Source: Setoptus koraiensis (lineage: Eukaryota > Animalia > Arthropoda). From it: 64,000 bases of DNA. Positions 5,973 through 47,776 of this stretch are shown here, one piece after another. How positions within the stretch are numbered: position 1 is the stretch's first letter; each line of letters begins with the position of its first letter. A model generated the notes under the pieces. The model saw only the letters and a list, made by a program, of their open reading frames with translations, did no database searches and was not told the origin of the DNA. Made by a program: the position numbers and the translations under genes. The stretch is from assembly GCA_048013815.1 (NCBI GenBank), contig CM106586.1, forward strand, positions 16,678,001 to 16,742,000, given 5' to 3'.

Positions 5973-6036
5973 TGTCAAACCATTAAAAGATCGAAATACT
6001 GAAACAGTAAATAGTGAATAGTGAATATCAAAAAAT

Positions 6037-6042
6037 ACTTGC
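6037..6042 (-). other. Non-canonical GC 5' splice site (GC-AG intron 219-6042)
   Basis: AACCAG|GCAAGT lies at the conserved KYEQ|ACNEF PBX junction. It joins in frame to SVQEF. The nearby GT 4 nt downstream would break the frame. Confidence 0.85.
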
Positions 6043-6299
6043 CTGGTTATATTTCTCGTATTCGTTGTGATAAACGTTTCTAATTTGGGAAAGTTTGGCT
6101 TTGTAATCAGAATTCTCTATAACTCCTTCGCTGGGCGACACTTGACCGCTCACGGGCACCGCTAAGGCCACCGCGGCCGTATTGATGGGATTGCCCCTGC
6201 TGTCCAGAGTGGAAACTCCCTCGGCGGCGAGCATATTGTCTAGGCGTTGTAGTTGCATATCGGGCGGTTCCTCTTCGTGTTGGTTGCGAATACTTAGGC
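6043..6299 (-). CDS. exd: extradenticle/PBX coding exon 2 (end of PBC-A, linker, start of PBC-B)
   Basis: (G)LSIRNQHEEEPPDMQLQRLDNMLAAEGV...IENSDYKAKLSQIRNVYHNEYEKYNQ matches Exd [28 protein letters not shown]...[26 protein letters not shown]. Acceptor is aatgacAG (6301-6300), phase 1 start; donor is CAG|GCAAGT. Length is 257 nt (2 + 85 codons). Confidence 0.96.
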
Positions 6300-6961
6300 C
6301 TGTCATTACATCATCATTACGTCCAATTCGTTCAATTATCCATTATTCCATATTGCGCACGATAAATAACGACGATAATATACGATGATAATATACGATG
6401 ATAATATAAAAGATATAAACGCATGATTAGAGATACATACAGCACAGACAGGTGATTAGTGTTATTAGTTGATGTTATTAGTTTGTGGTGGTGGACACTT
6501 GTTTATAATTATCAATTGGTTGTTATTATCAGTATTATCGCTTGGCTAATCGGCCCGTTATCAGTTGTGCGCCATGTTGCCACTGGCAACACGTTATTAC
6601 GCATTATTACGCATTAATGTGTGTGTGTCGTATAATACAAATACTATTATGTAATTATTATAGGCGCCCTCGTTACGGTGTGTACCTGGCCTGCATTCAA
6701 TTCACATTGGCCGCTGTTGGCCGCTGTTGGCCGCCGTGAATTGTTGTCAATGTTGTTGTTGTGAATTGTGTAATTGTGTCAAAGACGCAATTAATGGGCC
6801 TCGTGTCAATCAATGTCACACAGTGACAACGCGCGCGCTGTATTCTACTTTGCGTTGCCCAGCAACCGCACCGGCCCGACCGGTCGGCCCGGCCCGGCCA
6901 GCTCAACCGGCCCGACCAGCGGTCCTGTCGGCCATTGATTGGCCCGCAGTCCGCGGCGTGC

Positions 6962-29324: not shown

Positions 29325-29574
29325 CTATTCTGTCTTTGAGCTCGCACAAGACGCTGTAGAGGCTCGGGGTCATGGGGTGCTCTTGCAGTTGGTGCTTGAT
29401 GAGTCTGTTGACGTGACAATTGGGCTCGTTGTCTATTTGCAGCATCTCGTCTAACAGCTGATGGATGTCGCGCTTCATGGTGGCCGCTATATTATTATGA
29501 TGGCTGGCACTATTATTGTGATTTTGACTGTGATTTTGATTACTATTATTCGCTAATGACACTGCGGCCAGCAT
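29325..29574 (-). CDS. exd: extradenticle alternative first coding exon 1B (PBC-A N-terminal part)
   Basis: MLAAVSLANNSNQN...MKRDIHQLLDEMLQIDNEPNCHVNRLIKHQLQEHPMTPSLYSVLCELKDRI(G) resembles PBX [49 protein letters not shown]. Donor is ATAG|GTGAGTAT (phase 1), compatible with the phase-1 start of exon 2. The start could instead be the internal ATG of MKRDI. Confidence 0.88.
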
Positions 29575-30497
29575 CTCACGTGTGTTCGGCGCGACAGCCG
29601 CCAACACGCCAACACGCCAACACGCTAATACGCTAATACGCTAATACGCTAATGAGTCTAATGAGTCTAACGAGTCTGATGAATGACGCTGATTGATTAT
29701 GTTGTTCACTGCAAATCTGGCCCTTTTATTGCTGACGATTTTATGGCCGTCGGCCGGTCAAGCGACTGGCGCGATTGTCGGATTTGGGCGATTCGGCGGA
29801 TTTGGGCGATTCGAGATTCGCGATTCACGACGAGCGGAACAGGGCGAGTGGCGCGAATTGGGCGAGTGGCGCGAACTGGGGCGAATTGGGCGAATTGGGC
29901 GATGGGCACGGAATGCAAACACGATGATTGATGCTTCACTTGACTTGATTTATTTATATTACAACTCTCACACAAGCCGATGATTTATTGTTTTTTGACA
30001 CTGGCCGCGATTGTCGCCGTGAGCTGCGCCGATGAGCACTGACTGGCCGCCGCTGCACCGACTGCGAGACGGTACGAGATTGACGATCGGCGTCAAAAAT
30101 TGACGAACTGCCTGCGAACTGCGCCGAATGTGCGCCGTGCGTGTGTACTTGACAGTGCGCGCCAACAACAATGGCTTCTCTGTCAGAGAGTCTCTGTCAG
30201 AGTCTCTGTCAGAGAGTGGCCGTCAGAGAATGGCCGTCAGAGTCGCTGGCCGCTTCTTGGCGTTCGCTGTCAGACGGCGCTGCTAGAAGGCAGCGCTGTC
30301 AGTCTAACAGTCCAACAGCAGTCAGTCCAACAGCGAACAGTGTGTGTGTGTGTGCGCCGAAGAGGCTTCTTTTTGGACGCTTCTGTGCCACACAATCCGC
30401 GGTCCGCCGGCAGTTGGCGCGCCGGCCCGTCAGTCAGTGAGCGCGACAGCCAGTCACTATTAATAATAATATTCTTTGTGCCACCATTTAAACTCCA

Positions 30498-30524
30498 CCC
30501 AAAACGCAAGTCTGCGCATGTCGA
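30498..30524 (-). promoter_or_regulatory. 27-bp element upstream of exd exon 1B (copy B)
   Basis: CCCAAAACGCaaGTCTGCGCATGTCGA is 25/27 identical to 42131-42157 and contains a TGCGCATG (NRF1/EWG-like) core. Function is inferred. Confidence 0.6.
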
Positions 30525-30789
30525 CCGGGCCAAATCAATTCATCTTTTACAACGCTGCCCATTGGCCATCTTGGCCGCGGGCTTCTCGCCTTGTCGCTTG
30601 CTCGCCCGCTTCTCCGGCTTCTCGAGCCACTGGCTGCGGCCACCCGACGGCGCCGGGCAGCGCCGAACGGAGACTGGACCAAGGCTGGCCGCAGCTCGGG
30701 CCGGCTCACAAGACAATGTCAGACAATGGCCAACAGCTAATTCATTGATCCCTTAATCGGCCTAAACCGAGCCAATCGTTTACCGTTAC

Positions 30790-30890
30790 CAAAACGCCGC
30801 ACAAACGCCGCACCAACGCCGCACGAACGGATAAACGCCGCACGAACGGATAAACGCCGCACGAACGGATAAACGCTGCATGAACGGATA
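30790..30890. repeat. 20-nt minisatellite (AAACGCCGCACGAACGGATA-like)
   Basis: About 3-4 copies plus partial copies. Confidence 0.8.
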
Positions 30891-31148
30891 ATAAACGGAC
30901 AAAACTAAATAATTGCGCCTGGCCGCCAACAGCCCACTGCAGACTGGGCGACACAGTCGCACTGCGACACAATGTCACACACCTTCGCCAATCATTGGCG
31001 GCCAATGCCAACAACAACGCGCACGACAGCTGACTGCAAGACGCTGACTTGTGAAATCAAATCGCCAGACTCTGAAAATCAGAGTCTCTGATTGAGAGTG
31101 TGATTGTCGGACTGGTGCCCAGGTCTGCAAACAACAGCGACACCTCGT

Positions 31149-31158
31149 CTGTCAATCA
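31149..31158 (-). promoter_or_regulatory. Perfect PBX-MEIS/PREP (Exd-Hth) decamer TGATTGACAG
   Basis: The plus strand reads CTGTCAATCA, about 1.6 kb upstream of the exon 1B ATG. Confidence 0.4.
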
Positions 31159-31880
31159 TCTGTCAGCGGCCCTATCAGCGTGATGGCGAGTTAAATTGTC
31201 ACCCTCGCCCGGGTTACATCATTGCACACACATCGTGAGCATGGACGAATCGACTCGAACATTGCCAGTCGATTTTGGGCATGTCGAGCATTTTGGGCAT
31301 TGTGACTGACAATTTGTGAGCACTGTGAATCACAATCTGTGAGTATTTTGGGCATTTTGAGCGGTGCGACCGGTGTGAGCAGTGCGACCGGTGCGAGCGG
31401 GCATAGGCACCGAGGCGGGTTTGCGCTCGGGGCCGGGGCACCGGCAAACCCGTGGCGGGCACTCACAAGTTGTGAGTCACAAGTCGGTAGCGAGTCAATA
31501 GCTAACAGGTAGGTACGCGTTGCTGATGATAGTTGTCAGCTGGAAGCAGCTGTCAACTGTCATCTGTCATGTGTCAGTTGGCACTAATTCAATAGCGACT
31601 GTTGAATTGGACCGGCATTTGGCCGACACTGACTGTCGATGGCGCTGTCAGGCCAACGCCGTCGACGGTGCCCCGACATGCATTGCTAACTGCGCACCTT
31701 TTGTTTGTTCGATCTTCGACTGACAACAAACTGAGACTGTGAGCAAACATTGTCTACGCAAATATTGTAGTACGTGTTTGGCGAGCTACAGTCACTCATT
31801 TATATATTGAGTGATATCGTGCGTGATACTGTGAGCGATTATTCACTTCAATATCGCGAGCGAATACTTATACCGTCCCC

Positions 31881-31957
31881 ATAATAATAATAATATTAAT
31901 AATATTAATTACAATTATTATAATTATTAATATTAATAATAATAATATTAATAATAT
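31881..31957. repeat. Almost pure A/T island of ATA/TAT/ATT units
   Basis: About 77 bp with a single C, just upstream of the PLA2 ATG. Confidence 0.9.
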
Positions 31958-31979
31958 AGCCCATAATTAATTAATCATC

Positions 31980-33287
31980 ATGATGCTCTTATTTGTGTGC
32001 CTGTTACTGTTATTGCCGGGCCAACGCGACGCCAGCACCAGTGACGCCGACGTGACAAGCCAAGACGACAGCAACAACCACAACAACAACAACAGCAACA
32101 GAACACTGTCTATGCCATTGTTGCTGACAGACGAACAAATAGCCAGTTTAGTGGCCGATTATCACAGCGAGAATAGTAGCGTTTTACTGGCCAAATGTGA
32201 CAAGACTTTCGCCTATGTCAAGTACCAAACTGTGCCAAATGACAATCACGACACCACCACCACCAACAACAACAACAATGCCGCCGACCAGTGGACCGAT
32301 GAGTCGGCGGCCCGCTCCCTGTTCACAATCAACGTGTCGCCCCTGGAACAGCTGATCAGGCCCCACATCAGCAACAACAACAACAATATCAAAAACAACG
32401 ACAACATCAACAGCGACAACAACGCCAATTGGACAACAACAACAACAACAAGTGCGATGGGCACACTCCGTTTGAGGTCGTCGTTTATTGGCACAAACAG
32501 TGACAGCACCAACACCAACAGGCTGCAACTGATACCGTTAGAGCGGGTGTTGGGCAACAATGCGCAAATTGTCGATTGTTACCTGGTCGACATAAACAAA
32601 CGGCCCCAGGAAATGCGCGAAATTGAGCGTTTTGTCAACAGGAGCAGCGAAACAATTGGCTTCGAGCAAATGATGACGCTCATGGTGAAATGTCGCCAGG
32701 TTCAATTGGATCAAATTGACAACAACGCGCACTTTGAGCACAATCTCACCAGAGCCGACAGCGGCGGTGACGACGATTATTCAGCCACACCAATCACAGA
32801 GGACGAATTGACCACTCTGGCGGGCGCCGTCACAACTACCGAACAACCAACAACTGGCCAGCAGCAGCAGCAGCCGACTAGCACAAGCGCCCCCCGACTT
32901 CCGGTCGGCGGCGCTGACAACATGTCAGCGACGACTGAGCGCCAGACGCTCACGTTTGGCATTGCGCCGGGAACGTTGTGGTGCGGTCTGGGCGACCGGG
33001 CCGCCGGCTACCGGCAGCTGGGCGAGGAGCGACAAGTGGACGCTTGTTGTCGGTTGCACGACCACTGTCCCGTGCGGCTGAAACCGTTCACCTTTGACTA
33101 CGGCCTCAACAATTGGTCAGTGTACACGCGCAGCCACTGCAAGTGCGACGTGGACCTCGACGAGTGCCTGCAGGCCGCAAAATCAAACATGGCCCAGCTG
33201 ATCAGAATGATCTATTTCAAGCTCGTGGGCACGCAGTGCATCGAGCTGGACAGCGACTCGGCAGCCGCTGGCCCGGCGGCGCGCTGA
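31980..33287 (+). CDS. Secreted phospholipase A2, group III (bee-venom-like family), single exon, 435 aa
   Basis: Hydrophobic N-terminus MMLLFVCLLLLLPG and an N/T/Q-rich pro-region. The C-terminal domain IAPGTLWCGLGD...DACCRLHDHCP...RSHCKCDVDLDECL has the Ca-binding loop (WCGxG), the catalytic His-Asp (HD) and the HCxCD motif. AATAAA at 33532-33537. Confidence 0.93.
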   Translation: MMLLFVCLLLLLPGQRDASTSDADVTSQDDSNNHNNNNSNRTLSMPLLLTDEQIASLVADYHSENSSVLLAKCDKTFAYVKYQTVPNDNHDTTTTNNNNNAADQWTDESAARSLFTINVSPLEQLIRPHISNNNNNIKNNDNINSDNNANWTTTTTTSAMGTLRLRSSFIGTNSDSTNTNRLQLIPLERVLGNNAQIVDCYLVDINKRPQEMREIERFVNRSSETIGFEQMMTLMVKCRQVQLDQIDNNAHFEHNLTRADSGGDDDYSATPITEDELTTLAGAVTTTEQPTTGQQQQQPTSTSAPRLPVGGADNMSATTERQTLTFGIAPGTLWCGLGDRAAGYRQLGEERQVDACCRLHDHCPVRLKPFTFDYGLNNWSVYTRSHCKCDVDLDECLQAAKSNMAQLIRMIYFKLVGTQCIELDSDSAAAGPAAR

Positions 33288-33531
33288 GCGCGCCCTCTCG
33301 CCGCTTTCTCAGTGGTCGGGTCTGGAAATGGTCGGGTCTGGAAATGGTCGGGACCCGACCCTGGCGAGCCCCATCTCACCATTCATATGTGCGGATATAT
33401 AATGTCCGCGTCGGGCCGCTGCGGGCCGATGACTGGATGCGACCAGCCGTCTGTTCGAAACCGGAAATTCTCAGTCATTCAATGTCAAACGGCGCACAGT
33501 CGCCGAGTCAATCATTTTATCGGCACAGCAC

Positions 33532-33537
33532 AATAAA
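33532..33537 (+). terminator. Candidate poly(A) signal for the PLA2 gene
   Basis: AATAAA about 245 nt after the TGA. Confidence 0.5.
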
Positions 33538-36500
33538 AGCTTTTTATCCCCTGCTCACCTCGCGCACTGCTCACTCGATACACTGCCCACTCGATACACT
33601 GCTCACACCACTCGATAGCACGTAATTACTGCGTAAGTTACGTAACGCAACACGGTTCGCACACTGTCCGCCGGCACTCACAGCCTGTGAGCCACAGGCG
33701 AGTGCCACGAGCAACTGTTCGCGTGCCTGCGCCGCGTCCGGCCCACAGCCAACGGTGACGGCGTTGCCACCAGCGGCCAGCTGACTCGCCCACTGGGTGC
33801 GCAATGGCTCGCGCTGGGCCCGTTGGGCGCGCTGGTTTGCGCACAGGTGAGCCGGCACCGGTACCACTGACCGACACACACGGGCAACACTGACCGACAC
33901 ACACACGGGCGACACTGACCGACACACACACGGGCGACACGGGCAGCGTGACAGCGAGCTGGCGTGCAGTTGCGTCATCGCTGATTGTCGGCCCGTCTCT
34001 GGCCGACAATCAGCGCGTCTGTGGCGGGCGTGTGAGGGCCGCAGCACACATAGCAGACGGGCAGCGCAACGTCACGTCACGTCAATCAGCGCCGGCTCAC
34101 GGATATGGAAGGGCGTCGTCGCGTTTGTCGTCGCCGATGCGCTCCCATTTGGCGCTCGCCGCCAATGACAACACCGATCGAATTGACGCTGGCCAGTCGG
34201 TCGGTCGGTCGGTCGGCCCGTCGGCCGGCCCCAATCGCGAGTAAATCACCGGCCGGCCGACAGTGTGTGTGTGCGGGTCGTGCCCGTCGCACGGGCACCA
34301 GCGGGCCCAGTCATCATCGCGAGCGGGCCCAGTCATCGTCGCAATATGTGCTGGCCGCTGCGTACCGCTGGCTGTTGCCGTCGGGCCCGTCACAGGGCGA
34401 CAAGGCGGCGCTGCGCGCCGCCGACGAGCTCATTAGTTTGCCGGAACAGAGCCTATATGGGGCAGACAGTGATGCCGAGCTGATGTTTGCGCTCCGGCGA
34501 CTTGTTTGCAGCGAGCCGAGTGCGTGTGTGCGTTAGTTGGGGCCCGCTCTGGGGCCGCGCGCACACACACACACACACACAACTGCCCGCTGCGGCGGAC
34601 ATGCGGACGGGGCGCGCTGCAGTTTGTGGAGATGTTACTGCTGCCGCTATACGGGCGCGCTATATCCGCGCCATATCCGCGCCATATCCGCGCCATATCC
34701 GCGCTATATCCGCAAACTGCAGCCCGCGAATGGGCGACTGCGGCGAATGGGCGAATGGGCGAATGGGCGACTGCGGCGAATGGGCGACTGCAGCGAATTG
34801 GGCGATGACGCGCGCGCTCGCCGAAAGAATCATTGTCGTGTAAATTTGCCAATGATTAGTTGCACAAACACGCGCTGGCGTGTTTGCACACAATGCCGTC
34901 TGGCGTGTTTGTCGCTCTCTCCGGCTGGCTCGCGCGCTGTTGCGTAACGCGGCCGAGCGGCCAAAAGTCAGCGAGCGAGAGAGCCGAACAAAGGCAATCG
35001 AACGCGTTGTCGTGGGCGCTTGTTTCATCAAATCAAATCAAGTCGCGAGTGGAGTCGCGAGCCGAGTCGCGGATTCGCGCCCATCGGGCCGCCGCCGACC
35101 TTCGCCGGCAGAATTAAATCGGAGCCAGCGGCTGGCGCTGATGCTCGCCAGCGACACACCGCGAGCGAGCGACGGGCGGCGAGCGGCACTCGCCAAGAGC
35201 GCGCCCGCCGTCGCTCGAGCGGCGGCGGGCGCAGCGGCCAACGGGCGACGTAATCAGTGCGCGGGTTGTTGATTGCAGCACGGGCCGCCGACTGGCTGTC
35301 GCGATGGCGCTGCAGCCCGCGGGCCGGCGGCGGAGCGAGCGTTTGAGTGAATAGATGAGTGAGCATGAGAGTCGCGAATCTCTCTAGGCTCTCGCTCTGT
35401 AGGCTCGCTCTGTCACTGGCTCTCCCAGGGATTGCGCGTCGGGGATAGCGCGCCGGGGATTGCGCGCCGGGCTGGCGCGTCGGGCTTGCGAGGGAGCGCG
35501 ATTGTGCGAGGGCGCGTGTGGCGCCATTCAAGCAAGAGCGACTTTCTTGCCAATTCCGCGTCCAAATGCCCATTGCGTGTGTGTGTGGCAGCCAACGAGC
35601 AAAGGGGGACACCCCGGTCGGTGTGTGCGTCGGGCGGTTGCAGCGTCGGATTGGTTGCGGCAGCGCCGCGCAAAACAACAAAAGCAGAAACAAAGATGAA
35701 GGGCCCCCTCCTCTGGGGAGAATGGCTTTGTGCAAGTGAGCAGCGCTGGGCGCTCTCACAGCTCGCTGCCAGCCCGAGCCCGAGCGCCAGCCCGAGCCCG
35801 AGCGCCAGCCCGAGCCCGAGCGCCAGCGACAAGCCGGGCGCCCACGACGCCAACAAGCCGAGCGCCGACGAAACAAATGGATACACAAATGGAAAACAAA
35901 AGTAGTTCTCGCAGCGCCTCGAATCAAATCGAATCGAATGGCGGCATCGGTGCACGAGCCGACGAGTTGATGGATACAAATGGAAAGCAAAATGCGAACG
36001 CACACACATACATCACTCCGGCCGGGCTGCCATATCACTACTATATCACTATAGGAGTGGCTTCTTTGGGGCCCCCTTCGCTATCGAGCGCGCCGCTGCT
36101 CGGGCCACCGCACTTGATAGCGGTTTGATTAGTATTAGAGGCCGGGCGATAATAGCTACTCTCGGCATTGCAGCACGCGCGCGCGCTCGCGCGGGCCCCA
36201 TCGCGCGGCCTCTAATGGCTGTCTAAGGGCGGCACATCAACGGCGCCGCCAGCACTCGTCGTGCAATTGCTCGTCGGGCGCCCCACTTCTCCTTTCTACT
36301 TGAGTGCGATTCTTTTTCACTTTCGTCGTGACTCACTACTGGCGACACTGGCGGCACCTGCTACTCGCTGCTCGCTGCCGCCGCAAAATCGCTGGCTCGC
36401 CCCGGAGTCGGCGGCTCGCTTCGGAGTCGGCGGCTCGCTGGGAACGGGAGCCCGCGATTCCGCGCCGCGATGGCCGAGATTTGGCACCATCGGCACACAA

Positions 36501-39500
36501 ACAAACAAAGCGACCTGCATCCCACGGCGCCCCCATGCTCGCCGTCGGCGAATCACACCATGTGATCGAGCCCGCTGACGAGCCCCGCCGACGAGCGCCG
36601 CTGATCAGCGCGCTCCGACCAGCGGGCCCCGATCAGTGCTGGCCGCATGTGCACGAGAGAGTGTGTGTGTGTGCACCGTGTGATGTATGGGGCGACCGGG
36701 GCCAATTGTTTGCTGGGGCCCCGGCTGCGTTGGCGCGCTGATGCGTTGCGGGCGCGCTTGCAGCGCGGATATTTGTTAAACTTGAACACACACACACACA
36801 CCGTGAGCTTGTGCCGCGAGCGCGCGCTCTTAATGACGACGAATGGTCTTGCTGGTGCTCGTGCAAGGATGACGATTAGCGGGATCAGCGCTAATGGAGG
36901 CGCCCACGCTGCTGGCATGCAATAATCGTCGTGTTCGCCCTGGCGCCGCCGAACAATTTCCGCGCGCGCGGGCCCCACTTGTGCCGCTCGTCTAGTCGGC
37001 TCGTCTATGCGGCTCGTACCGCCGCCGCCGCCACGGCCGGCCCCCACATGACTGCGCGCCCAGACCGTGCCGGCCAGCCCGAGCTGTTATGTTGTAACTG
37101 GGGCCGGGCCGCTCCAGCGCGGCGCTCGGACGCTTGCAGCGCCGAAACAAATAGCGGCCAAGTGGCCAAATCATTGCGATGCTGAGGACGATTGATCTCA
37201 ATTTGGCGGCTGGCACAACGAGCGGCGACTAGCGTTCGAACACTGTGCGCTTGAAATGCATACAAACGAACGCTACAAACAGTGGATACAAACAGCGATA
37301 GCTGGCACAGAGCGAAAAGTAGACGGATAAGTAGACACAGGCAGAGAATGGAGAGAAGACGAAGAATTTGATTGTGGAATGATGATGATTATCTCATTCG
37401 CTACACACACACACACACACTCATACAAGCGGCTCAATAGCGACTGGCAACTGTGGCATTTAGAAGCCTGGCGAGAGAACACACAACTCAAACAGTTCGA
37501 GCGCTCGGTTCGCAGCCTCGGTTCGCGGTTCGCACTCGAACGTTTGAACGTTCGAACGTCCGAACGTTCGAGCGTTCGAACAGCAAGGTGAGCCACAGGC
37601 AAAGGCAAACATCAAATTCGGCGCTGGAACGTGGAAGGCCGAAGACTATCGAATGTGTGTGTGTGCGCAGATAATAAGAAGAGATCGCTGTCTCCTACTG
37701 GCTCCTACAACCACCGACTACCACTGCAACCACCGACTACCACTGCGACCACTAACAAACAGCAACAGCCAACAACAAACAGGTAAAACAGGCACCAATT
37801 TCAGTGTTTGTGTGCTGCTAAACTCTGCAAATCAACACAATGTTGATCATCATCATCAACTGCATGATGTGTGTTCGAAGTTCGAGCCAACGAGCCACTA
37901 AGCACTTTGGCCGAACCAAACGACTGCTGCTGCTTCTCAGTTCGCAGCTCGGCTCGTTTTGGCTCGGCTCGTTTTGGCTCGGCTCGGCGCGGCTCAGCCG
38001 GGCCGGCCGGTGAGCCCGTCGACCAAGTTGAGCATCGTCAGCGTGGTCACGTCGCTGCTGCTTCTAAGAACTGACCATTGCACACACACACACACTGTGT
38101 AGCTTGCAAATGGCGTAATGGCGCTCGAGATCATGATGTTGTTCTCTGGCTTAGCGGCGGCGCTCAGGTGAGATGATGATGATGCTCGGGTCGTAGCATC
38201 ATGCCATTTCACCTGACTGGCGCTCGCCAGTGATGATCTGACGGACTTGTCTGACGGTGTGAGCGAGCATCTGCTGCCGCTCCGGCCGTCGCCAATACGC
38301 GCCAGCCCAATTCTGACGCTGAGTCAAGAGAGATCAGTTAAAATGAGAGGTAAAAAAGGGAATGAGAATCAAAATTAGAATTGGCAGACCATTCTCTGTC
38401 CATTCTTGAGGTCAATTTAAACAACACACACACACACACACGCTTAGCCAGAGAAGGCAAATTACGATGATAATGAACAATAAATGATGAAAAGTGAATA
38501 CACACACAGCATGCGCATATTTATATTTATACTCTGTATGAATGTTGCTCGGCCGGCCAAGGCCAGCCCTCTGACCAAGCCAGCTCCGGCGAAACTTTCG
38601 AAGCGTCTCTCGCTCTGCCAGAGACTCTCTGGGCAACCATTAAAGCTCAATATCATTCAATTTGCAGAGCATGAGACCATTACAGCGACGCGCAACGCTG
38701 CCAGCCGAGCCAAGCCAACTAACAGCAAAGCTAAAGTAGCAACAAGTGAACAGGTGAACAATTAATATTGATGGTGATTTTGCTGTTGCTGTTGATGTTG
38801 CTGTTGCACTGGTGCTGTTAGTTGGCGGTGAATAAAGATAAGAATATGTTAATATTTCGACGCCATTCAACGCACCGACGCAATAGCAACGACACATCAT
38901 GGCGGCGGCAACAACAACAACAACAACAACATTGCTCGCCACCAGCCAGACCCGAGCGCGCCCCCACCCCGCATTCGCTGCATATTACATATATCTGTCT
39001 GTTTATGTTTATTTGCATCTCTTTTTGCTGGCTCGTCTGGCGAATATCTCTCTTTGTTTGTATCGTTGTTGGCTAGCGCACCACTCTCAAATCGCAGCTA
39101 TTGTCGGCCATTCGAAATCGTCGGTATTGGCCTATTTTGGGCGGTACAACTCTCGACCGACCGACAGTCGGCATGAGCGGCAACATCTCCAACCCGGGAT
39201 GCACCGGCCTACAAAACGCTACAAAAACATGGAGGGTCCAGCATTGCGCGAGACAATTACGGAAATTATTTATCAGAATGAACGTGCATAATAATAATAA
39301 TAGTGGCACCGCTACAACCTTCACTGTCCACCATGTGTGATCCAGATCAATCATTCTGCTTCATAAAAATCATCAGCTCTCAAGTGATCACGTCAATGGG
39401 TGATGATTGAGCGCCTGATGCGATGTCAGCCAGTGTGTTGTCTTGTTTGCACTGATGCGAAATAAAGATAATTTAATCAGTAATCACTCAATGATTAGCT

Positions 39501-41416
39501 AATAGTTAATTCTTTCGCTCTCACTTAGTTCTTGCTCAATTCAATCGTATGAGCCCCAAACGCTTGCAACAACCAGGTAGACATACGGCAGTTATCATTA
39601 TTCAATCATACCACACTTGAGCCACTTGCAAAACACACTGGCCATATAAATACTGGCCAGGTAGTTTTAAAAATAGCTGCTTATAAAAATGATAATTTTT
39701 AGTTTGTGTCTACAGTAAGTGTGAAACAAGTATGGCACACACAACACACATACTCTTCTTATCAAGAGAGCTCATTGACAACTGTATCTAATTAGGACCA
39801 CTTTTGCCAGACTCATCACTCTCTGGGATGTTTGAGTCTCGCTGTTTGTGTGTGGGCACTTCGCGAATAACAAAATACTCATACAAGACAGCTCAATCAA
39901 ATCAGACATCTTGTTGGTCCGACAATTGGACGGACAGCTGTTGTCTCAACACTCACATTAGTTAATTGTGCAATGTCAGTGGATATGTTAGGGGACCCAA
40001 CGAGATGTTGTGTCGCCATTATTTTCTACGGACAACTGATTGTATCAGTAATGTTGCTTGCTTCGAATACAGTCACATCTGATGGGACACACGATTGGCG
40101 GCCAATATTGTGTGAGAGTCGGCACTGACTGACAATCAAAATGCTGACTATCAAAATAATTTTGTCTGCTTTTAAAGGCGATCGAGTATCCGAATTTACT
40201 ATACCAAAAGCGTAAATTAGAACGTTTCGACGTTTCGCCAATCCAGGTAAAGGATTGACCATTCGCCCTCGTGAACCAACAGGCAAATCTGCCTGGCGGA
40301 TCTGCCAAATAGGGCCCTACTGTATCTTGGGAGTATCTCCAAGCAAGCTACAACAACTGAAACAATGATCACTTTTTCTCGTTTCTCACAAACGTAGCAT
40401 ATGAATTCGCTCATCGAGGACAAGGGTTTGCGTGAAATCATCTACGAGTTGGTGATTTGACATAAACTCGTGTTATGATAGACCAATGATGAATTCTTTG
40501 CTGACGAAAATAAAGTAGATTCGGATATTCAAATTGGTTTCAATCACTCGAACTAGCGATTTCTGTGACAGAATGGCACATTGATCATTTTTCTGAGGCA
40601 CCAAAACAAACTTGATTGAATTTTCCAGCTAGATTTTGCTCAGCGATGGCATATAGCTAATATGTTGGCTAAGCGGGATGAATCTATATAAATATGCCGG
40701 GCACACATACACAACAGAAAATCATTTATTTGAGGTGTGGCAAACGCTCACGGGGACCCGTGGGGAACCTCGGAATTCAATCTACTGAATGTTAGCTGGC
40801 CTCGTGTGACCAGCTAACATACAATAAATTTGACGAAACTGGTGGTGCTAATTAATAATAATTGGGCGCCCAATTGCATAAGTCAACTCTTTTCTGTGGT
40901 GAGTGCCATTTTGTCATGTGTATGAAAAATGATGTTGCTTGTTGTTGGAGCAACAACCGCCTGATCACAATTAATCACAAAAAGACGATGATCCTTTTGG
41001 ATATAATTTGAACATTTGGACAATTTTAAGTGATGAGCGAATTCGCATTTGCTTGACAGGATCGTCTGGTGCTGACACAAATTATTCGAATTTGCATCAC
41101 GACGCTTGTGTAATTTTGCACGATTGTGGACGTATAATTTTGTACGATTGTGGACGTATAATTTTGTAGGATTGTGGACGTATGATTCTGCACGATTACG
41201 ATATAATTTGAGACGATCATAACACAATGTTGTACGATGGTAATATATTTTTATTGAATTTGCCACGATTTTGCACGTTCGACATGATCGAGTGTTGCAA
41301 CTAGTCATGGGGCAAATACGTATCAAAATAGTGCTCGCGTTGATAACAAGTTGATCAACTGGATTATTGGCGATAATCAGCTGATTATCGTTTGTCGTAT
41401 TGGTAATGATACTCAC

Positions 41417-41624
41417 CTACTCTATCCTTGATTTCGCTCAACACCGCGAACAGTGTTGGCTTCATAGGGTGTTCATTGAGTTGAAGTTTGATTGCTTGAG
41501 CTCTATCCAAATTTGCCTCACTGCTTATCTCAAGCAATTCTTCTAACATTTGCTCAATATTTCGTCTATGTGGTGAATGATTGGTTGTCAATGAAACGGC
41601 GGCCACTGTGGCCATGGTTAACAT
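41417..41624 (-). CDS. exd: extradenticle alternative first coding exon 1A (PBC-A N-terminal part)
   Basis: MLTMATVAAVSLTTNHSPHRRNIEQMLEELLEISSEANLDRAQAIKLQLNEHPMKPTLFAVLSEIKDRV(G). Donor is GTAG|GTGAGTAT (phase 1). Length is 208 nt (69 codons + 1). The ATG is at 41624 or 41615. Confidence 0.88.
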
Positions 41625-42130
41625 TTAAATGGGATGCTTATTCTTGCTTGTTTGTGGCCGTTGTTGTCGCGTTGTTGTTGTTGTTGTTGCTGTTAATTTA
41701 TCGAGAATTTGCGAATTTATCTTCTTCGTTCTCTCGTTGTCTTGGTGATAATATCTGGCCGATACAGACAAATATAATGCACACCAATTATAATAATAAT
41801 TATAGTAATAATAAGTCGTTGTTGTCTTCTCTATTCACATGATATCATTTGTTGTTGTTGTATTTGCATTCTTTTTTCTTTTTTCTCTTCTTCTTCTCAC
41901 AACAACATCATCATTTCACGCAAACGACCAAATGTGAGTGTGTGTGTGTGTGTGTGTGTGCGTTTGTGTGTGTGTGTGTGTGTGCGTGTGTGTGTGCGTT
42001 CTCTCGCTCAATCTCTCAATTCGACACTGTTCGCTCCGTTCGATCGTTCGTTTGTCCGTTTGTTAGTTCGACGGCCTTCCAACTATTGGTTTGTCTGTTA
42101 TCAACACACACACGCTCAATAATAATACTG

Positions 42131-42157
42131 CCCAAAACGCCCGTCTGCGCATGTCGA
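42131..42157 (-). promoter_or_regulatory. 27-bp element upstream of exd exon 1A (copy A)
   Basis: CCCAAAACGCccGTCTGCGCATGTCGA, in the same orientation relative to its exon as copy B. Confidence 0.6.
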
Positions 42158-43031
42158 GGGGGAAATTCAAACATGTAAACAAACCAAAATTCAACCTTCT
42201 AGCGCTCGCGTGGTGCCATCTATTGCACGCTTTCACAACCACTGCACAACCTGATCAGCTGATCGGCCTCACTACAACCATACCACTGTATCATACAGTC
42301 AGTAATACAGAGTCTGTATTACAGACTCTGTGGGCCTACCATAACGCACCCCTGCACATATTGTTGATCGCCGATAGGGCGCTTTCATCTCGGCACCATT
42401 GAGTCGGTACCAATGGGTCAATACTATTCAATAGTAACTATTGTGTGTGCTTGTTAGCCTGATGGAGGCCGCTGACAAGTGGCACAGTTGAGCGGCAAAT
42501 CGTGATACACAAAACAAAGAAACAGTTGAAAACATTCTGTCGTGACACCACGTTCGCTGCCCTGCATCTCTGGCGGCTACATGTGCCTCTAGCGGACAAT
42601 AAACTGACGCACGTGATCAAGATAAAGATAACAACATGACAGAGTGTCAGGGAACTGCAATCAAGTTGACAGCGGCCCGATATTCTAACCGATTGCATCC
42701 AGCTCGATATGATTTATCCTTATTATTCAACGCAATCAACTAGATCGCACCAACATGAGAACATTTTTTGGAAAACACTCCAATACTGGAGCTTCAAAGT
42801 GAAACCAACTCTAATCTACTTCTAATCACACTCCTCTGTGTACTGTGTGTCAAAGAATTTTTATGATGGAACTTCGTAGACGAACAAATGTAGTAAAAAT
42901 TCATGCCAACCAATCTCTGACAATCTTGTGAGTCTCTGAAAGGAGCTATTTGTCACACTTGTGACAATGCCCTCGCTTCTGGTATAACTTTACATTAAAT
43001 CGCATTATGAACGCAAAAAGTTGAAACTTTT

Positions 43032-43309: not shown

Positions 43310-44956
43310 ATGGAGGACGAACGATTTAAACAGGTGCTCAAGGACCCCAGGTTCAAGAATATGCGCCAGAGAAAAGTCAAGATAGACAAGAGATTCGCGC
43401 CCATGTTCAAGGATAAACAATTCAAAACTGACGACAATTTACAAAGATTTTATCAGTTAGATAAAGACGAAGATGAGGACGAAGACGAAGATGAAGATGA
43501 AGAGGAGAACGAGGATGAAGAGGTATCATCCTCTTCAGATGAATCATCATCCTCAGACGAAGAGGACGAGACAAATGAAGTTCAGTACGATTGGGCTGCT
43601 CTTGACAAAGATGCAAAACCAACAGAGGAGGCAACTAGACGTTTGGCTATCTGCAATTTCGACTGGGATTATCTTGAAGCTACAGACATTTTCGTTCTTA
43701 TCAACTCATTTAAACCTCCCAAAAGTGTCAAAGTCTATCTATCCGACTTTGGAAAAGAAAGATTAGAAGAAGAAGAAAAGAAGGGACCTAAAGAACTCAT
43801 CGAAATGCCTAGAATTGATGAGGAAGACGAGGAGGATCGCGACCTAGATGATCTGAAGGAAAAACTTCAAGTCGTTAAAAAGAAAAGTACTAATCCAGTC
43901 TGTCAGTACGAAGATGCAGATGAAATGACCGAAGAGCAAAGAGCAGTGGCTGAGCGAATCAGGGTCTATCAGCTCAACAGATTGAAATATTATTACGCTG
44001 TAGTCGAAATGGATAGTGTAGAAAGTGCCGATCACGTATATAAAGAATTAGATGGATTAGAATACGAAGGCAGCTCGACTGCTTTAGATCTTAGGTTTAT
44101 ACCCGACGATATGGAATTTGAAGACTCTCGCATGAAGAGCGAATGCCATGCAATGCCTGATTTGGCATCATATGAAGCTCCCGTATTCATAAACACAGCC
44201 TTACAGCAAACTAAAGTCAATTTGACTTGGGATAGTACCAATCACAGAAGGAAGGGTAAACTACACAAAACGTATACCATGATGGAGTTGGAGAAGGGCG
44301 ACCTTGAGGCTTATCTGGCCTCAGACTCTGAAAGCGACAATCAAGATGAGATGCTTGAAGATTTGTCGGGTGAAGAAGGTGAACCCAAAATGAACAAATA
44401 TAAACGTTTATTGCAGAAGTTGCAAGAGGAGGAAGAACAGAAAGACAAGATAGACTTAGAAGTTAACTTTTCAGAAGAGGAAGACAACAAAGGAAAAGTG
44501 AAAGATGAAGATGGAAGTGATGATCATGAAAATGATGAAAGCGATGATGATGACGGAAGCGATGACGACGATGGAAGCGATGACGACGATGGAAGCGATG
44601 ACGACAATGAAAGGGATGATGATGTTGAAAGCGATACTCCCGTTAAAACCGATGATCCTATTCAGAGTGATGATGATGATAGAGGCCGCGGTTCCAAGGG
44701 TCGCAAATCTAAGCGTCGTCATGCTAAAGCTCGCAACACCAAAGGTGGCGATGACGAAGATGAAGGCTTGAAATTGTTGCTTCTCGATACAGACGCGAAA
44801 AAAGAATCCGAATTTCAGTTCAATCCCGAGGATGATCGTTTCAAGGCTGTTTATGATTCCCACCTTTACAATATTGACCCTTCAGATGCAAATTTCAAAA
44901 GAACAAAGGCATACGAGGAGTTAGCTAAGAGAAAGCGTCGAAAGACTTTATTATAA
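43310..44956 (+). CDS. ESF1: ESF1 homolog (18S rRNA processing factor), single exon, 548 aa
   Basis: N-terminal DPRF...KVKIDKRF..MF; TRRLAICNFDWD; YQLNRLKYYYAVVE; DGLEYEGSSTALDLRFIPDD; acidic tracts; C-terminal NUC153-like DDRFKAVYDSHLYNIDPSDANFKRTK. The first ATG is at 43310 (the ORF track starts at an upstream TTG). Confidence 0.95.
   Translation: MEDERFKQVLKDPRFKNMRQRKVKIDKRFAPMFKDKQFKTDDNLQRFYQLDKDEDEDEDEDEDEEENEDEEVSSSSDESSSSDEEDETNEVQYDWAALDKDAKPTEEATRRLAICNFDWDYLEATDIFVLINSFKPPKSVKVYLSDFGKERLEEEEKKGPKELIEMPRIDEEDEEDRDLDDLKEKLQVVKKKSTNPVCQYEDADEMTEEQRAVAERIRVYQLNRLKYYYAVVEMDSVESADHVYKELDGLEYEGSSTALDLRFIPDDMEFEDSRMKSECHAMPDLASYEAPVFINTALQQTKVNLTWDSTNHRRKGKLHKTYTMMELEKGDLEAYLASDSESDNQDEMLEDLSGEEGEPKMNKYKRLLQKLQEEEEQKDKIDLEVNFSEEEDNKGKVKDEDGSDDHENDESDDDDGSDDDDGSDDDDGSDDDNERDDDVESDTPVKTDDPIQSDDDDRGRGSKGRKSKRRHAKARNTKGGDDEDEGLKLLLLDTDAKKESEFQFNPEDDRFKAVYDSHLYNIDPSDANFKRTKAYEELAKRKRRKTLL
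44947..44952 (-). terminator. Candidate poly(A) signal AATAAA for RTEL1, inside the last ESF1 codons
   Basis: Plus-strand TTTATT within ACT TTA TTA TAA; it begins 5 nt past the RTEL1 stop. Confidence 0.5.
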
Positions 44957-47776
44957 CTAAAACCTTTCCTGCTTCCTTGAGGCCGAATTAAAAAGCAAAG
45001 GTTTAAAATCCTTCATTTTAAGTTTAACATCACATTTACCACATTGATCTTTTCTTTTCAACAAACCAATCCAACAATCACTACAGGATACTCGAGAGCA
45101 TGCACAATTCGATCGTAAGGGCGTTACAGCTTTCCCTAAACAAATGGAGCACTTGTACGGGGCAGGCCGACTGGCCTCTGACAGCTGGTCGAGTATGGAA
45201 TAGTTGGGGTCGGATGCTGAAGTAGCCAAGCTCGAAGGTTTAGACCATTTCGTCTTCTTCCTTGCAAATATATTGAGACTTCTTGGTTGAGAGAGTATTG
45301 AATTTGATGTTGTCGATGTGGTTGCCACGCGTTCATCACTTGGAGTAGTTCCCGATTGGTCCTCAGGAGTTGATGATGATGGACATAGGCTATCGAAGGC
45401 ACTAGATGTGGTTACATTGGCCGATGAACTTTGTTGGCTATTTTGTGATTGTTGCTGTCTTACTTTTTCTCGGGCTTTCTCAGCAGTCTGTCTATCAACA
45501 GTGTAGCTTGCAACCATGGCGTTCTCTTTTGCTTTAAAATTAGTCGGACGTATCACCTCTTCCGGAACAACAGATTTTGGACGGCTAGTAGAAGCAGTAG
45601 AGTTATCTATTTGGAATGCACCCAACTGCTCGCCGGATGTCACAGACGGTTCAGGTAATGCCAAACCATGCGACTTAAAAAATGATACTACAGTCCTTTC
45701 AGCTTCCAGGAAGGTAATCTCTTTATCAGAATAGTGTGGCTTTATCCAATTCGAAAAACTGTCACTTGCACTTCTGAAACGTGGATCACATAATATTACT
45801 AAACCGAAATCATCTTTGCTTCGAATGACTCTGCCTATTGTTTGATTCAAGGCTCTCTTCATTTGCAAACTATACCAATGCTGCCCGTTCATAGCATTTC
45901 TAGAATTTTTGTTCCTCTGATCTAGATACTTTCTTTTCATTTGTACCCTAGGATCAGCTATCCCGGGGAAGGGTGGTCCCGTTAATATCACCGATCTACA
46001 ATAGTCATCGTTCAAATTAACTCCCTCTGATAATTTTCCGCGACAAACTCCAAAGAAAACAGCTCCCGTAGAATTCTGTGTGTCTATGACGCGTTTAAAT
46101 GCCGCGATATCCGAGGCGAAAGTAGTTTTGGATTTAGGCTCTATGAAAAGTTGCTTACAAGCTAACATGCTTTTCCAAATTGTTGTTCGCTTCCAAGATT
46201 CTATCACAGAATACATGAGGTAATATGATTGAAAGAAGACTACGGTTCCACAGGGGAGTATTTTGAATAGTCTAAGCAGTGTTGATCCAATAGCTCTATG
46301 ATAGGTGGGCTTCTTCGATTCATTGAAGTCAGAAACGAGAGGGTAATTTTCAGGAGATCTACCTAATGTAATGAATTCAAGTTGACCTCTACTGATAACA
46401 TGAGGAGATTCCAGTGTGACTCCAATGTTAGTCTCTAGTTCGTCTTTATATGGTCCTAGAGGTGCTAATGTTCCTGAGGTGATAACTAATGATCTAATAT
46501 TGGCTGCACTCCTCAAGCGCCTTAAGCCAATAGCTGGGCTAAGACACCATAAATGAAATGTCCAATCCTTGGGCGGTTGATTGTCATGCGGTCTTTTGCC
46601 GTTTGTTGATTCATCAGACTTGAGTCTCTCCAAATAGGCTCGATAATATTGGCTGAAAGTTAATTTGTGTTCATTCATGCGGACAAGACTGAGGCAATCA
46701 TCGGGAAAGGCAAGACTAACAAAACTGCTGAACAGTTCCAATGATGTAACAAAATTAGCAACTTGTGTTGGATTTTGTACACCGGCAGCTAATAGAAACG
46801 CCGACATGGTATCGAGAGTTTCAACAAGTCTATCAGATACACTATATGTTATTCCACATGATTCTAACAGGGAGTAGAATTGTTCAGTTGAGCATTCTCT
46901 ATTAAATTCACCAAACGACCTGAGAGTAGATTGTTGCATATTTAGTGATGCAACTCGTACCTCTTCAAGTCTATCCGAGGTCAATTTCTCGATCATCTCC
47001 AAAATAGGATTTGGTTTTTGCTCCTTTTCTTTTTTGCCACCCTTTTCATTCCCGTCAGCATCGAAAAGATCGTCATTCTTTGGATTGTAACCAGTGCGAG
47101 TTAGGCCATGTCTCTGATAATTTTCCACATCGCTCAGTTTTTTGGGCAGCTTAAGCACACAATCTTGAATAGTCTTTAGCGACGACTCTGTTAGTTGGCC
47201 TGATACACAATCTTCTAGGATATTTTCTATGTTGTGTGCCTCGTCGAAGATAATAATGGAGTCCTCTAGTTTCAGGAGTTGATTCTTTCTCAATGATGGA
47301 TCCAAGATGTAATTGTATGGCGTAAAGATGATGGTTGCTTTGGTTTCGGCTAATTTTCTACTAGCAAAATATGGACAACATTGATTGGTCCTGCCGAAGC
47401 TAATTAGATCCTCTATGTCTAGAACATTGTTGTGATCCATAGCCTGTAGCTTATTTTCGTAATTTGAATAAAATTGGCACGAGTTTTGTGCAACGGCATT
47501 CCTACAGGCCCTATTTATGAGGTAATTTCCGGATTGCTCGCGTACTTGCTCATTGAGGCACATTTGTTCGCGACCGCCCAACACTACACCCGGTACTCTT
47601 GCGTAGGCGGTCCTCTTCATTTCTTTGGCCGCTTGGGCCAATTGTGCATGGGTCCTACTACTGTAATATATGTTTCCCGTTTTTTCCACCCTGTTTTCTT
47701 TCCAAGCTAACGAAGAACACAATAGAGCTAGAGTTTTACCTGTTCCAGTGGGGCTCTCCAGCAATGCGTTGGTTTT
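44957..47776 (-). CDS. RTEL1: RTEL1 Fe-S DEAH helicase, exon 2 (helicase core plus C-terminal C4C4 RING-like finger)
   Basis: KTNALLESPTGTGKTLALLCSSLAW (Walker A), IYYSSRTHAQL, Fe-S cysteines (REQMC, RAC, SCQFY, CCPYF), IIFDEAHN, GVCRGKLSEG, QTIGRVIRSKDDFG, and C-terminal CSIC..CAC..CSDC..CGKC. Acceptor is CTGACcaaacgacAG (47778-47777). Confidence 0.94.
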   Translation of the reverse strand, partial: KTNALLESPTGTGKTLALLCSSLAWKENRVEKTGNIYYSSRTHAQLAQAAKEMKRTAYARVPGVVLGGREQMCLNEQVREQSGNYLINRACRNAVAQNSCQFYSNYENKLQAMDHNNVLDIEDLISFGRTNQCCPYFASRKLAETKATIIFTPYNYILDPSLRKNQLLKLEDSIIIFDEAHNIENILEDCVSGQLTESSLKTIQDCVLKLPKKLSDVENYQRHGLTRTGYNPKNDDLFDADGNEKGGKKEKEQKPNPILEMIEKLTSDRLEEVRVASLNMQQSTLRSFGEFNRECSTEQFYSLLESCGITYSVSDRLVETLDTMSAFLLAAGVQNPTQVANFVTSLELFSSFVSLAFPDDCLSLVRMNEHKLTFSQYYRAYLERLKSDESTNGKRPHDNQPPKDWTFHLWCLSPAIGLRRLRSAANIRSLVITSGTLAPLGPYKDELETNIGVTLESPHVISRGQLEFITLGRSPENYPLVSDFNESKKPTYHRAIGSTLLRLFKILPCGTVVFFQSYYLMYSVIESWKRTTIWKSMLACKQLFIEPKSKTTFASDIAAFKRVIDTQNSTGAVFFGVCRGKLSEGVNLNDDYCRSVILTGPPFPGIADPRVQMKRKYLDQRNKNSRNAMNGQHWYSLQMKRALNQTIGRVIRSKDDFGLVILCDPRFRSASDSFSNWIKPHYSDKEITFLEAERTVVSFFKSHGLALPEPSVTSGEQLGAFQIDNSTASTSRPKSVVPEEVIRPTNFKAKENAMVASYTVDRQTAEKAREKVRQQQSQNSQQSSSANVTTSSAFDSLCPSSSTPEDQSGTTPSDERVATTSTTSNSILSQPRSLNIFARKKTKWSKPSSLATSASDPNYSILDQLSEASRPAPYKCSICLGKAVTPLRSNCACSRVSCSDCWIGLLKRKDQCGKCDVKLKMKDFKPLLFNSASRKQERF
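44987..44992 (+). terminator. Candidate poly(A) signal ATTAAA for ESF1, inside the RTEL1 coding sequence
   Basis: ATTAAA lies about 30 nt after the ESF1 stop and is antisense to RTEL1 codons TTT AAT. Confidence 0.45.

Follow-up and report, generated by a model that had tools for sequence, protein, structure and literature searches.

A conserved 27-bp element upstream of both alternative first exons of exd in the mite Setoptus koraiensis: a candidate promoter-proximal sequence

In the clustered protocadherins, a conserved sequence element (CSE) is located before each variable first exon (PMC3333863). NRF1 recognises two head-to-head TGCGC half-sites, GCGCNTGCGC, and a structural study has reported that the isolated NRF1 DNA-binding domain can bind one half-site and that a promoter with single half-sites was not activated (PMC10810270). 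The present work concerns a 27-bp element which occurs twice, in the same orientation, upstream of two predicted first exons of the exd gene in a stretch of 64,000 nucleotides from Setoptus koraiensis (GenBank assembly GCA_048013815.1, contig CM106586.1, positions 16,678,001 to 16,742,000 of the forward strand), this whole stretch being referred to as the window and providing the numbering used throughout. Exd/Pbx is the universal Hox cofactor, and its PBC-A segment is the part of the exd protein that binds Homothorax/Meis (Hth/Meis). An exd gene with two alternative first exons, encoding different Hth/Meis-binding segments as predicted here, is unusual.

The first exons of exd and the element before each

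A scan of the whole genome with the Pfam PBC profile identified a single PBC gene, exd, on the minus strand of the window. Positions 1-49 of the profile were matched twice, at 41418-41561 and at 29326-29469, and positions 49-120 and 117-181 were each matched once (at 6040-6303 and 33-227, respectively); a single exon 2 and a single exon 3 in the genome lie downstream of both first exons. Each of the two N-terminal segments, designated proximal and distal (Table 1), starts with an ATG followed by AAVSL, which is the counterpart of the vertebrate PBX N-terminal LAGVNLAGHS (PBX being seen among the search matches), and each ends in an identical phase 1 donor, G/GTGAGTATC, where the slash marks the exon boundary. 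Exon 2 begins with GC, which completes a Gly codon with the final G of either first exon, and continues as LSIRNQHEEEPPD. When scored against the PBC profile, for which the gathering score is 25, the two exon-1 peptides obtained 28.3 and 25.8 bits and both pass. Considering the ATG starts, the identical donors, the fitting phase of exon 2 and the PBC scores, the two segments are assigned from sequence as alternative first coding exons of one exd gene.

The element precedes both first exons in the same order and orientation. A first-pass annotation, made from the letters of the window, had placed the two 27-mers at 30498-30524 and 42131-42157, with 25/27 identity, the same orientation and distances of about 920 and 510 bp to the respective ATGs; the coordinates, orientation and identity were confirmed, and the measured distances are 924 bp (proximal) and 507 bp (distal). 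Both mismatches are adjacent (AA/CC on the plus strand), and in gene sense the element has the layout TCGACATGCGCAGAC[TT/GG]GCGTTTTGGG, in other words 15 invariant bases, a variable dinucleotide and 10 further invariant bases. The annotation had also reported no other copy, and this holds at a threshold of three mismatches or fewer both in the window, where no third copy is present and none of 100 shuffles gave two matches, and in the genome (48.7 Mb in two contigs), where no further copy was found. A common dispersed repeat, which the same annotation had named as one of the findings that would speak against its interpretation, is thus not what the genome-wide search of the 27-mer returned. 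When the two upstream regions are compared in windows of 27 nt, the element scores highest with 25/27, and none of 200 dinucleotide-preserving shuffles exceeded 21/27. The claim that the flanks cannot be aligned stood in part: in a sensitive BLASTN search the match grew to 41 nt at 83% identity (30498-30538 against 42131-42170, gapped; E 1.9e-5), by a weaker extension on the gene-upstream side of the element, and beyond this block no other non-coding flank aligned between the copies. The sole other segment that BLASTN could align between the two regions consists of the coding exon and nine intron bases. As had been estimated in the annotation (about 50%), the exon-1 peptides are 50% identical to each other.

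Shorter words within the element behave likewise. The 15-mer GTCTGCGCATGTCGA has these two as its only exact copies in the genome, its one-mismatch matches numbering two as compared to one in the control; TGCGCATGTCGA is encountered 7 times in all, where approximately 6 occurrences are expected for a random 12-mer; and the 17-mer CCCAAAACGCNNGTCTG matches the genome at the control level. Repeats and mobile elements, recognised by multiple genome copies, would give a different result from the two copies in 48.7 Mb, with sub-words at chance level, obtained here. Elsewhere in both upstream regions, shared 8-10-mers were found in the number expected by chance.

How far the surrounding sequence has decayed was assessed from the first exons themselves. 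Across 50 alignable codons, identity at codon positions 1, 2 and 3 amounts to 66%, 74% and 36%, respectively, none of seven four-fold degenerate sites is identical, and the synonymous divergence (dS) by the method of Nei and Gojobori (NG86) is undefined, meaning saturated. The two regions differ in guanine plus cytosine (GC) content as well (55% versus 39%). Because synonymous sites between the exons are saturated, neutral survival of 25/27 identity would not be credible. The 15 and 10 invariant bases around a changed dinucleotide indicate purifying selection at the nucleotide level, since neutral sequence that old should no longer align, as is the case for the flanks.

Upstream start codons, the 5' leaders and their surroundings

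The 5' leaders of both transcripts were located through selection against upstream start codons, the expected number of ATGs being derived from 2000 dinucleotide-preserving shuffles. In gene sense, the 910 nt upstream of the proximal start codon hold no ATG, as compared to an average of 14.0 in the shuffles, none of which had fewer than 5 (0/2000). ATG is the sole trinucleotide of the 64 that is absent from this sequence, CAT being present 15 times on the same strand, and the run is the longest ATG-free one on either strand of the window, the next being 698 and 615 nt. Its 3' limit is the start codon and its 5' limit is 13 nt short of the element; just upstream of the run, ATGs reappear at 30487, 30519 (within the element), 30543, 30562 and 30569. 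Upstream of the proximal element the density is normal, with 27 ATGs in 1455 nt where approximately 23 are expected. The corresponding 506 nt of the distal copy are depleted in ATGs, with 6 as compared to 11.9 expected (16/2000 shuffles), and upstream of the distal element the density is again normal (27 ATGs in 1152 nt). All six distal upstream ATGs (uATGs) fall within a 75-nt cluster, 41840-41914, and open upstream open reading frames (uORFs) of at most 12 codons. A 90-nt stretch at 41831-41920 (minus strand), bounded by GTGAAA (5') and AATAG (3'), holds all six; if, speculatively, this were an intron, the distal leader would contain no ATG in 416 nt versus 6.6 expected.

Since the ATG-free or ATG-depleted stretches start at or near the element and ATG density is normal upstream of it, the simplest reading is that both exd leaders would begin at the element or a few tens of bases 3' of it. 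Such a census of upstream ATGs allows 5' leaders to be located in a genome without transcript data, and may be reused elsewhere.

The explanation that we favour, and consider probable, is that the element represents a promoter-proximal cis-regulatory element, acting at the DNA level, and that it lies at the 5' boundary of both alternative exd transcription units. The promoter and the first coding exon would have been duplicated in tandem as one unit long ago, after which neutral sequence would have decayed so as to leave the coding sense of the exon, its splice donor and the element. The bipartite layout of 15, 2 and 10 bases may reflect two adjacent protein contacts or one dimer. Transcription would most likely start downstream of the element, no more than a few tens of bases away, and an AT-rich, TATA-like box comes after the element; both the binding of a factor and the exact start sites are what we infer from the arrangement. 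In gene sense, the proximal copy has TTTAAAT and TATTATTATTAA as its AT-rich sequence 3' of the element, and the distal copy has TATTATTATT, the AATAATAATA box being situated gene-downstream of the element in both, at 26 nt (proximal) and 3 nt (distal). Under this explanation, the shared element would mark the location of each exd promoter and offer a 27-bp target for mutation and binding assays. It further suggests that the promoter travelled with the exon, and therefore that at least one input is probably shared by the two isoforms. Retention of a promoter element following the tandem duplication of a promoter and first exon is the kind of outcome to be expected.

Table 1. Positions of the features discussed (window numbering, except for the last two lines; a slash within a splice site marks the exon boundary)
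Feature	Position	Strand	Remarks
Proximal 27-mer copy	30498-30524		plus strand reads CCCAAAACGCAAGTCTGCGCATGTCGA; gene sense (minus) reads TCGACATGCGCAGACTTGCGTTTTGGG
Distal 27-mer copy	42131-42157		plus strand reads CCCAAAACGCCCGTCTGCGCATGTCGA; gene sense (minus) reads TCGACATGCGCAGACGGGCGTTTTGGG
Weaker extension of conserved block, proximal	30525-30538	-	gene-upstream side of element
Weaker extension of conserved block, distal	42158-42170	-	gene-upstream side of element
AT-rich box, proximal	30460-30473	-	gene sense AATATTATTATTAA; 3' of element; putative TATA-like role
Second candidate TATA-like box, proximal	30486-30492		TTTAAAT, read from the sequence; putative role
AT-rich box, distal	42117-42128	-	gene sense GTATTATTATTG; directly 3' of element; putative TATA-like role
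Predicted proximal 5' leader	29575-30484	-	910 nt, ATG-free in gene sense
Predicted distal 5' leader	41625-42130	-	506 nt, ATG-depleted
Proximal alternative first coding exon of exd (predicted)	29325-29574	-	PBC-A segment; ATG at 29574; donor G/GTGAGTATC
Distal alternative first coding exon of exd (predicted)	41417-41624	-	PBC-A segment; ATG at 41624; donor G/GTGAGTATC
Shared exd exon 2	6042-6299	-	PBC positions 49-120; acceptor ACAG/GC
PLA2-like gene (Phospholip_A2_2)	31980-33287	+	intronless, 435 codons; long Asn/Thr-rich low-complexity stretches
ESF1	43310-44956	+	head-to-head with distal exd promoter
Nrf1_DNA-bind gene	C1:68773-69405		360 bits
Nrf1_DNA-bind gene	C2:8657259-8657816 and 8658042-8658140		298 bits

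Both putative exd promoters have a gene of the opposite strand next to them. The PLA2-like gene lies inside the exd intron that separates the two first exons, head-to-head with the proximal promoter. ESF1, the best named relative of which is from Aceria tosichella, has, in the window, exd exon 1 on one side and a convergent RTEL1-like helicase on the other (43310-47764). In five contigs of related mites (L003-L006 and L012), ESF1 is instead followed by a MIP (aquaporin) gene and exd exon 1 is not nearby; no exd exon or motif was found near ESF1 in the ESF1-anchored contigs, two of which (L005 and L012) have less than 1 kb of sequence upstream of ESF1. Since the flanks of ESF1 differ in these five contigs, the neighbourhood of the distal exd promoter is rearranged relative to those related mites. 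Contigs anchored on the PLA2-like gene likewise show no adjoining exd. Between 39000 and 48000, the GC fraction of the window falls from approximately 0.59-0.64 to approximately 0.40-0.42, and the AT-richer block holds the distal exd first exon, ESF1 and RTEL1, the proximal first exon being located in GC-richer DNA.

Searches for the first exons in other species gave little. A word search with the distal exon-1 peptide produced no match, a HMMER search with both exon-1 peptides retrieved generic PBX/Exd proteins only, none of them close, and a motif pattern scan and an exon-1 search of metagenome contigs were both blank. Two compact exd loci (L011 and L013) show no motif within 0.45 kb and 2 kb upstream, respectively, which says little given that these loci are distant and have a single first exon.

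Several smaller features of the locus may be recorded here. A (GT)n tract, or (CA)n in gene sense, is present in both copies on the same strand, approximately 140-190 nt beyond the element in the 3' direction (30340-30357 and 41937-42000); this may be left over from the duplicated unit, which is suggestive only, tracts of this type being frequent here (about one per 1.4 kb). The sequence ATTTTGGGCAT is found three times within approximately 70 nt at 31268-31340, where one stretch reads GATTTTGGGCATGTCGAGC, that is, the 7-mer TTTTGGG of the 3' end of the element (gene sense) joined to the 10-mer GCATGTCGAG, which corresponds to the plus-strand 3' end of the distal copy plus the next base. This resemblance is probably due to chance, because 10-mer matches between the upstream regions are present in the expected number. 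The donor of exd exon 2 reads CAG/GCAAGT (6036-6045, minus strand), resembling that of a GC-AG rather than a GT-AG intron.

Alternative explanations

A number of points weigh against the element being promoter-proximal. The start sites were placed by ATG depletion alone, and in the distal copy this depletion is moderate, with six uATGs remaining in the stretch. The comparison is between two copies in one genome, and no known factor's motif was found to be matched in full by the element. Spacing is not conserved either: the element-ATG distance differs between the copies (507 versus 924 bp), as does the gap from the element to the AT-rich box (3 versus 26 nt).

One alternative is that the element acts in RNA at the start of the 5' leader, its AUG, in the conserved context TCGACAUGC, opening a uORF that controls translation of both exd isoforms. 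The ATG is indeed invariant in both copies, the first seven codons (MRR[L/R]AFW) agree except for one residue, and the remainder of the proximal leader has no ATG, which would also fit a leader that tolerates this one uORF. However, a conserved peptide would be kept while synonymous sites vary, and the only change within these seven codons (CTT to CGG) is non-synonymous, the opposite of selection on the peptide. Past codon 7 the two uORFs diverge completely and their lengths are unequal (19 codons proximal, 29 distal), the proximal copy has another out-of-frame ATG at 30487, and folding of either strand at the element gave z-scores of -0.9 to +0.7, with no structure standing out. In each copy, moreover, the transcription start site would be confined to approximately 22 nt between the ATG of the element and the next ATG upstream. 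We consider this alternative unlikely. A role on the plus strand, as promoter or start of divergent transcripts (the PLA2-like gene, ESF1 or an unannotated non-coding RNA) that are linked to exd by position only, appears very unlikely. In both copies GCATGTCGA is indeed preceded, at approximately 25-30 nt on its 5' side, by an AT-rich box (TTTAAA at 30487-30492 and AATAATAATA at 42118-42127), and both exd promoters are head-to-head with a plus-strand gene, but the Phospholip_A2_2 and ESF1 genes are unrelated, whereas the minus-strand exons are paralogous. Plus-strand ATGs are present at normal density from the element to the start codons of these genes (12 in 1455 nt and 16 in 1152 nt), and therefore the element does not appear to be the leader start of either; the ATG-free stretches before the PLA2-like and ESF1 ATGs measure only about 300 and 140 nt, respectively. 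An Rfam search returned no match at the element, and in related mites neither ESF1 nor the PLA2-like gene is situated beside exd.

That the element is without function, whether as a chance match, as a piece of a mobile element or as the product of gene conversion over a short tract, is a highly improbable explanation, which draws on there being two copies only and on support confined to one genome. The shuffle tests exclude chance, and the genome-wide copy and sub-word counts exclude a repeat. Gene conversion over only 27-41 nt, lacking homologous flanks from which to initiate, is unlikely, and conversion would leave uniform identity, not invariant parts around a changed dinucleotide with a decaying extension; nor would absence of function lead one to expect that the element coincides with the leader boundary in both copies. 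It is barely conceivable that the copies are selector sequences which pair with one docking site in the pre-mRNA and so impose mutually exclusive splicing of the Dscam type, even though a conserved sequence in the same orientation before each alternative exon is what such a system would present. No reverse-complement copy exists in the genome at three mismatches or fewer, and when both copies were paired with every 45-nt stretch of the exd pre-mRNA region, the most stable duplex reached -28 kcal/mol, which only slightly exceeds the first percentile (-24.5) and compares with about -47 to -49 kcal/mol for own-complement controls. Furthermore, the exons carry the ancestral PBX N-terminus and a start codon, and would accordingly be first exons, not internal ones.

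Returning to a promoter-proximal element, a more specific role may be imagined in which it serves as a site of promoter choice or tethering, allowing shared exd enhancers to engage either of two promoters. We regard this as rather improbable; if it were true, promoter selection would switch the partner-binding surface of a Hox cofactor, and the locus would be a small-scale arthropod analogue of the CSE system in protocadherins.

Comparison with NRF1 sites and the protocadherin element

Two interpretations had been offered in the first-pass annotation. The one according to which the element is a phylogenetic footprint, with the promoter duplicated together with the exon, is supported by the uniqueness of the element, the saturated synonymous sites, the shared order and orientation and the leaders that appear to start there. 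The other, a resemblance to the NRF1/Erect wing site, reduces to one half-site. In both copies, TGCGCA presents a TGCGC half-site for one NRF1 domain, in which respect the element is like an NRF1/EWG/P3A2 site, but such a site has a head-to-head second half-site that the element lacks (PMC10810270); the corresponding bases read TGTCG, and GCGCATGTCG matches the consensus GCGCATGCGC at 7/10 positions in both copies. As an NRF1/Erect wing/P3A2 site the element consequently fails, the defining second half-site being missing, and 15-19 other conserved bases would be left unexplained. The genome encodes two proteins with a full Nrf1_DNA-bind domain (PF10491; 360 and 298 bits). A factor of the NRF1 type is probably active in this animal, because the full palindrome TGCGCATGCGCA has 15 genome occurrences versus one control match. 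Going by the motifs known to us, none of E2F, Dorsal/NF-kB, Su(H), GCM, Brinker and the Mad/Medea silencer fits both copies, and neither do Exd-Hth, the p53 half-site or the Drosophila Inr.

Among known systems, the layout of the locus comes closest to that of the clustered protocadherins, where tandem duplicated first exons have their own promoters, each with a short element in the same orientation, and splice to shared downstream exons, the element being kept while the rest of the promoter has diverged (PMC3333863). At exd, the tandem paralogous first exons are likewise predicted to splice to shared exons, and an element in the same orientation is found before each of them, with diverged flanks. 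Unlike the protocadherins, exd involves two exons only, in a Hox-cofactor gene of a mite, and the distance from the element to the ATG is variable (507 versus 924 bp). To our knowledge, the sequence of the element is unrelated to that of the CSE or of a CTCF site. By analogy, therefore, the exd element resembles the CSE system in its layout and is not a member of it by sequence.

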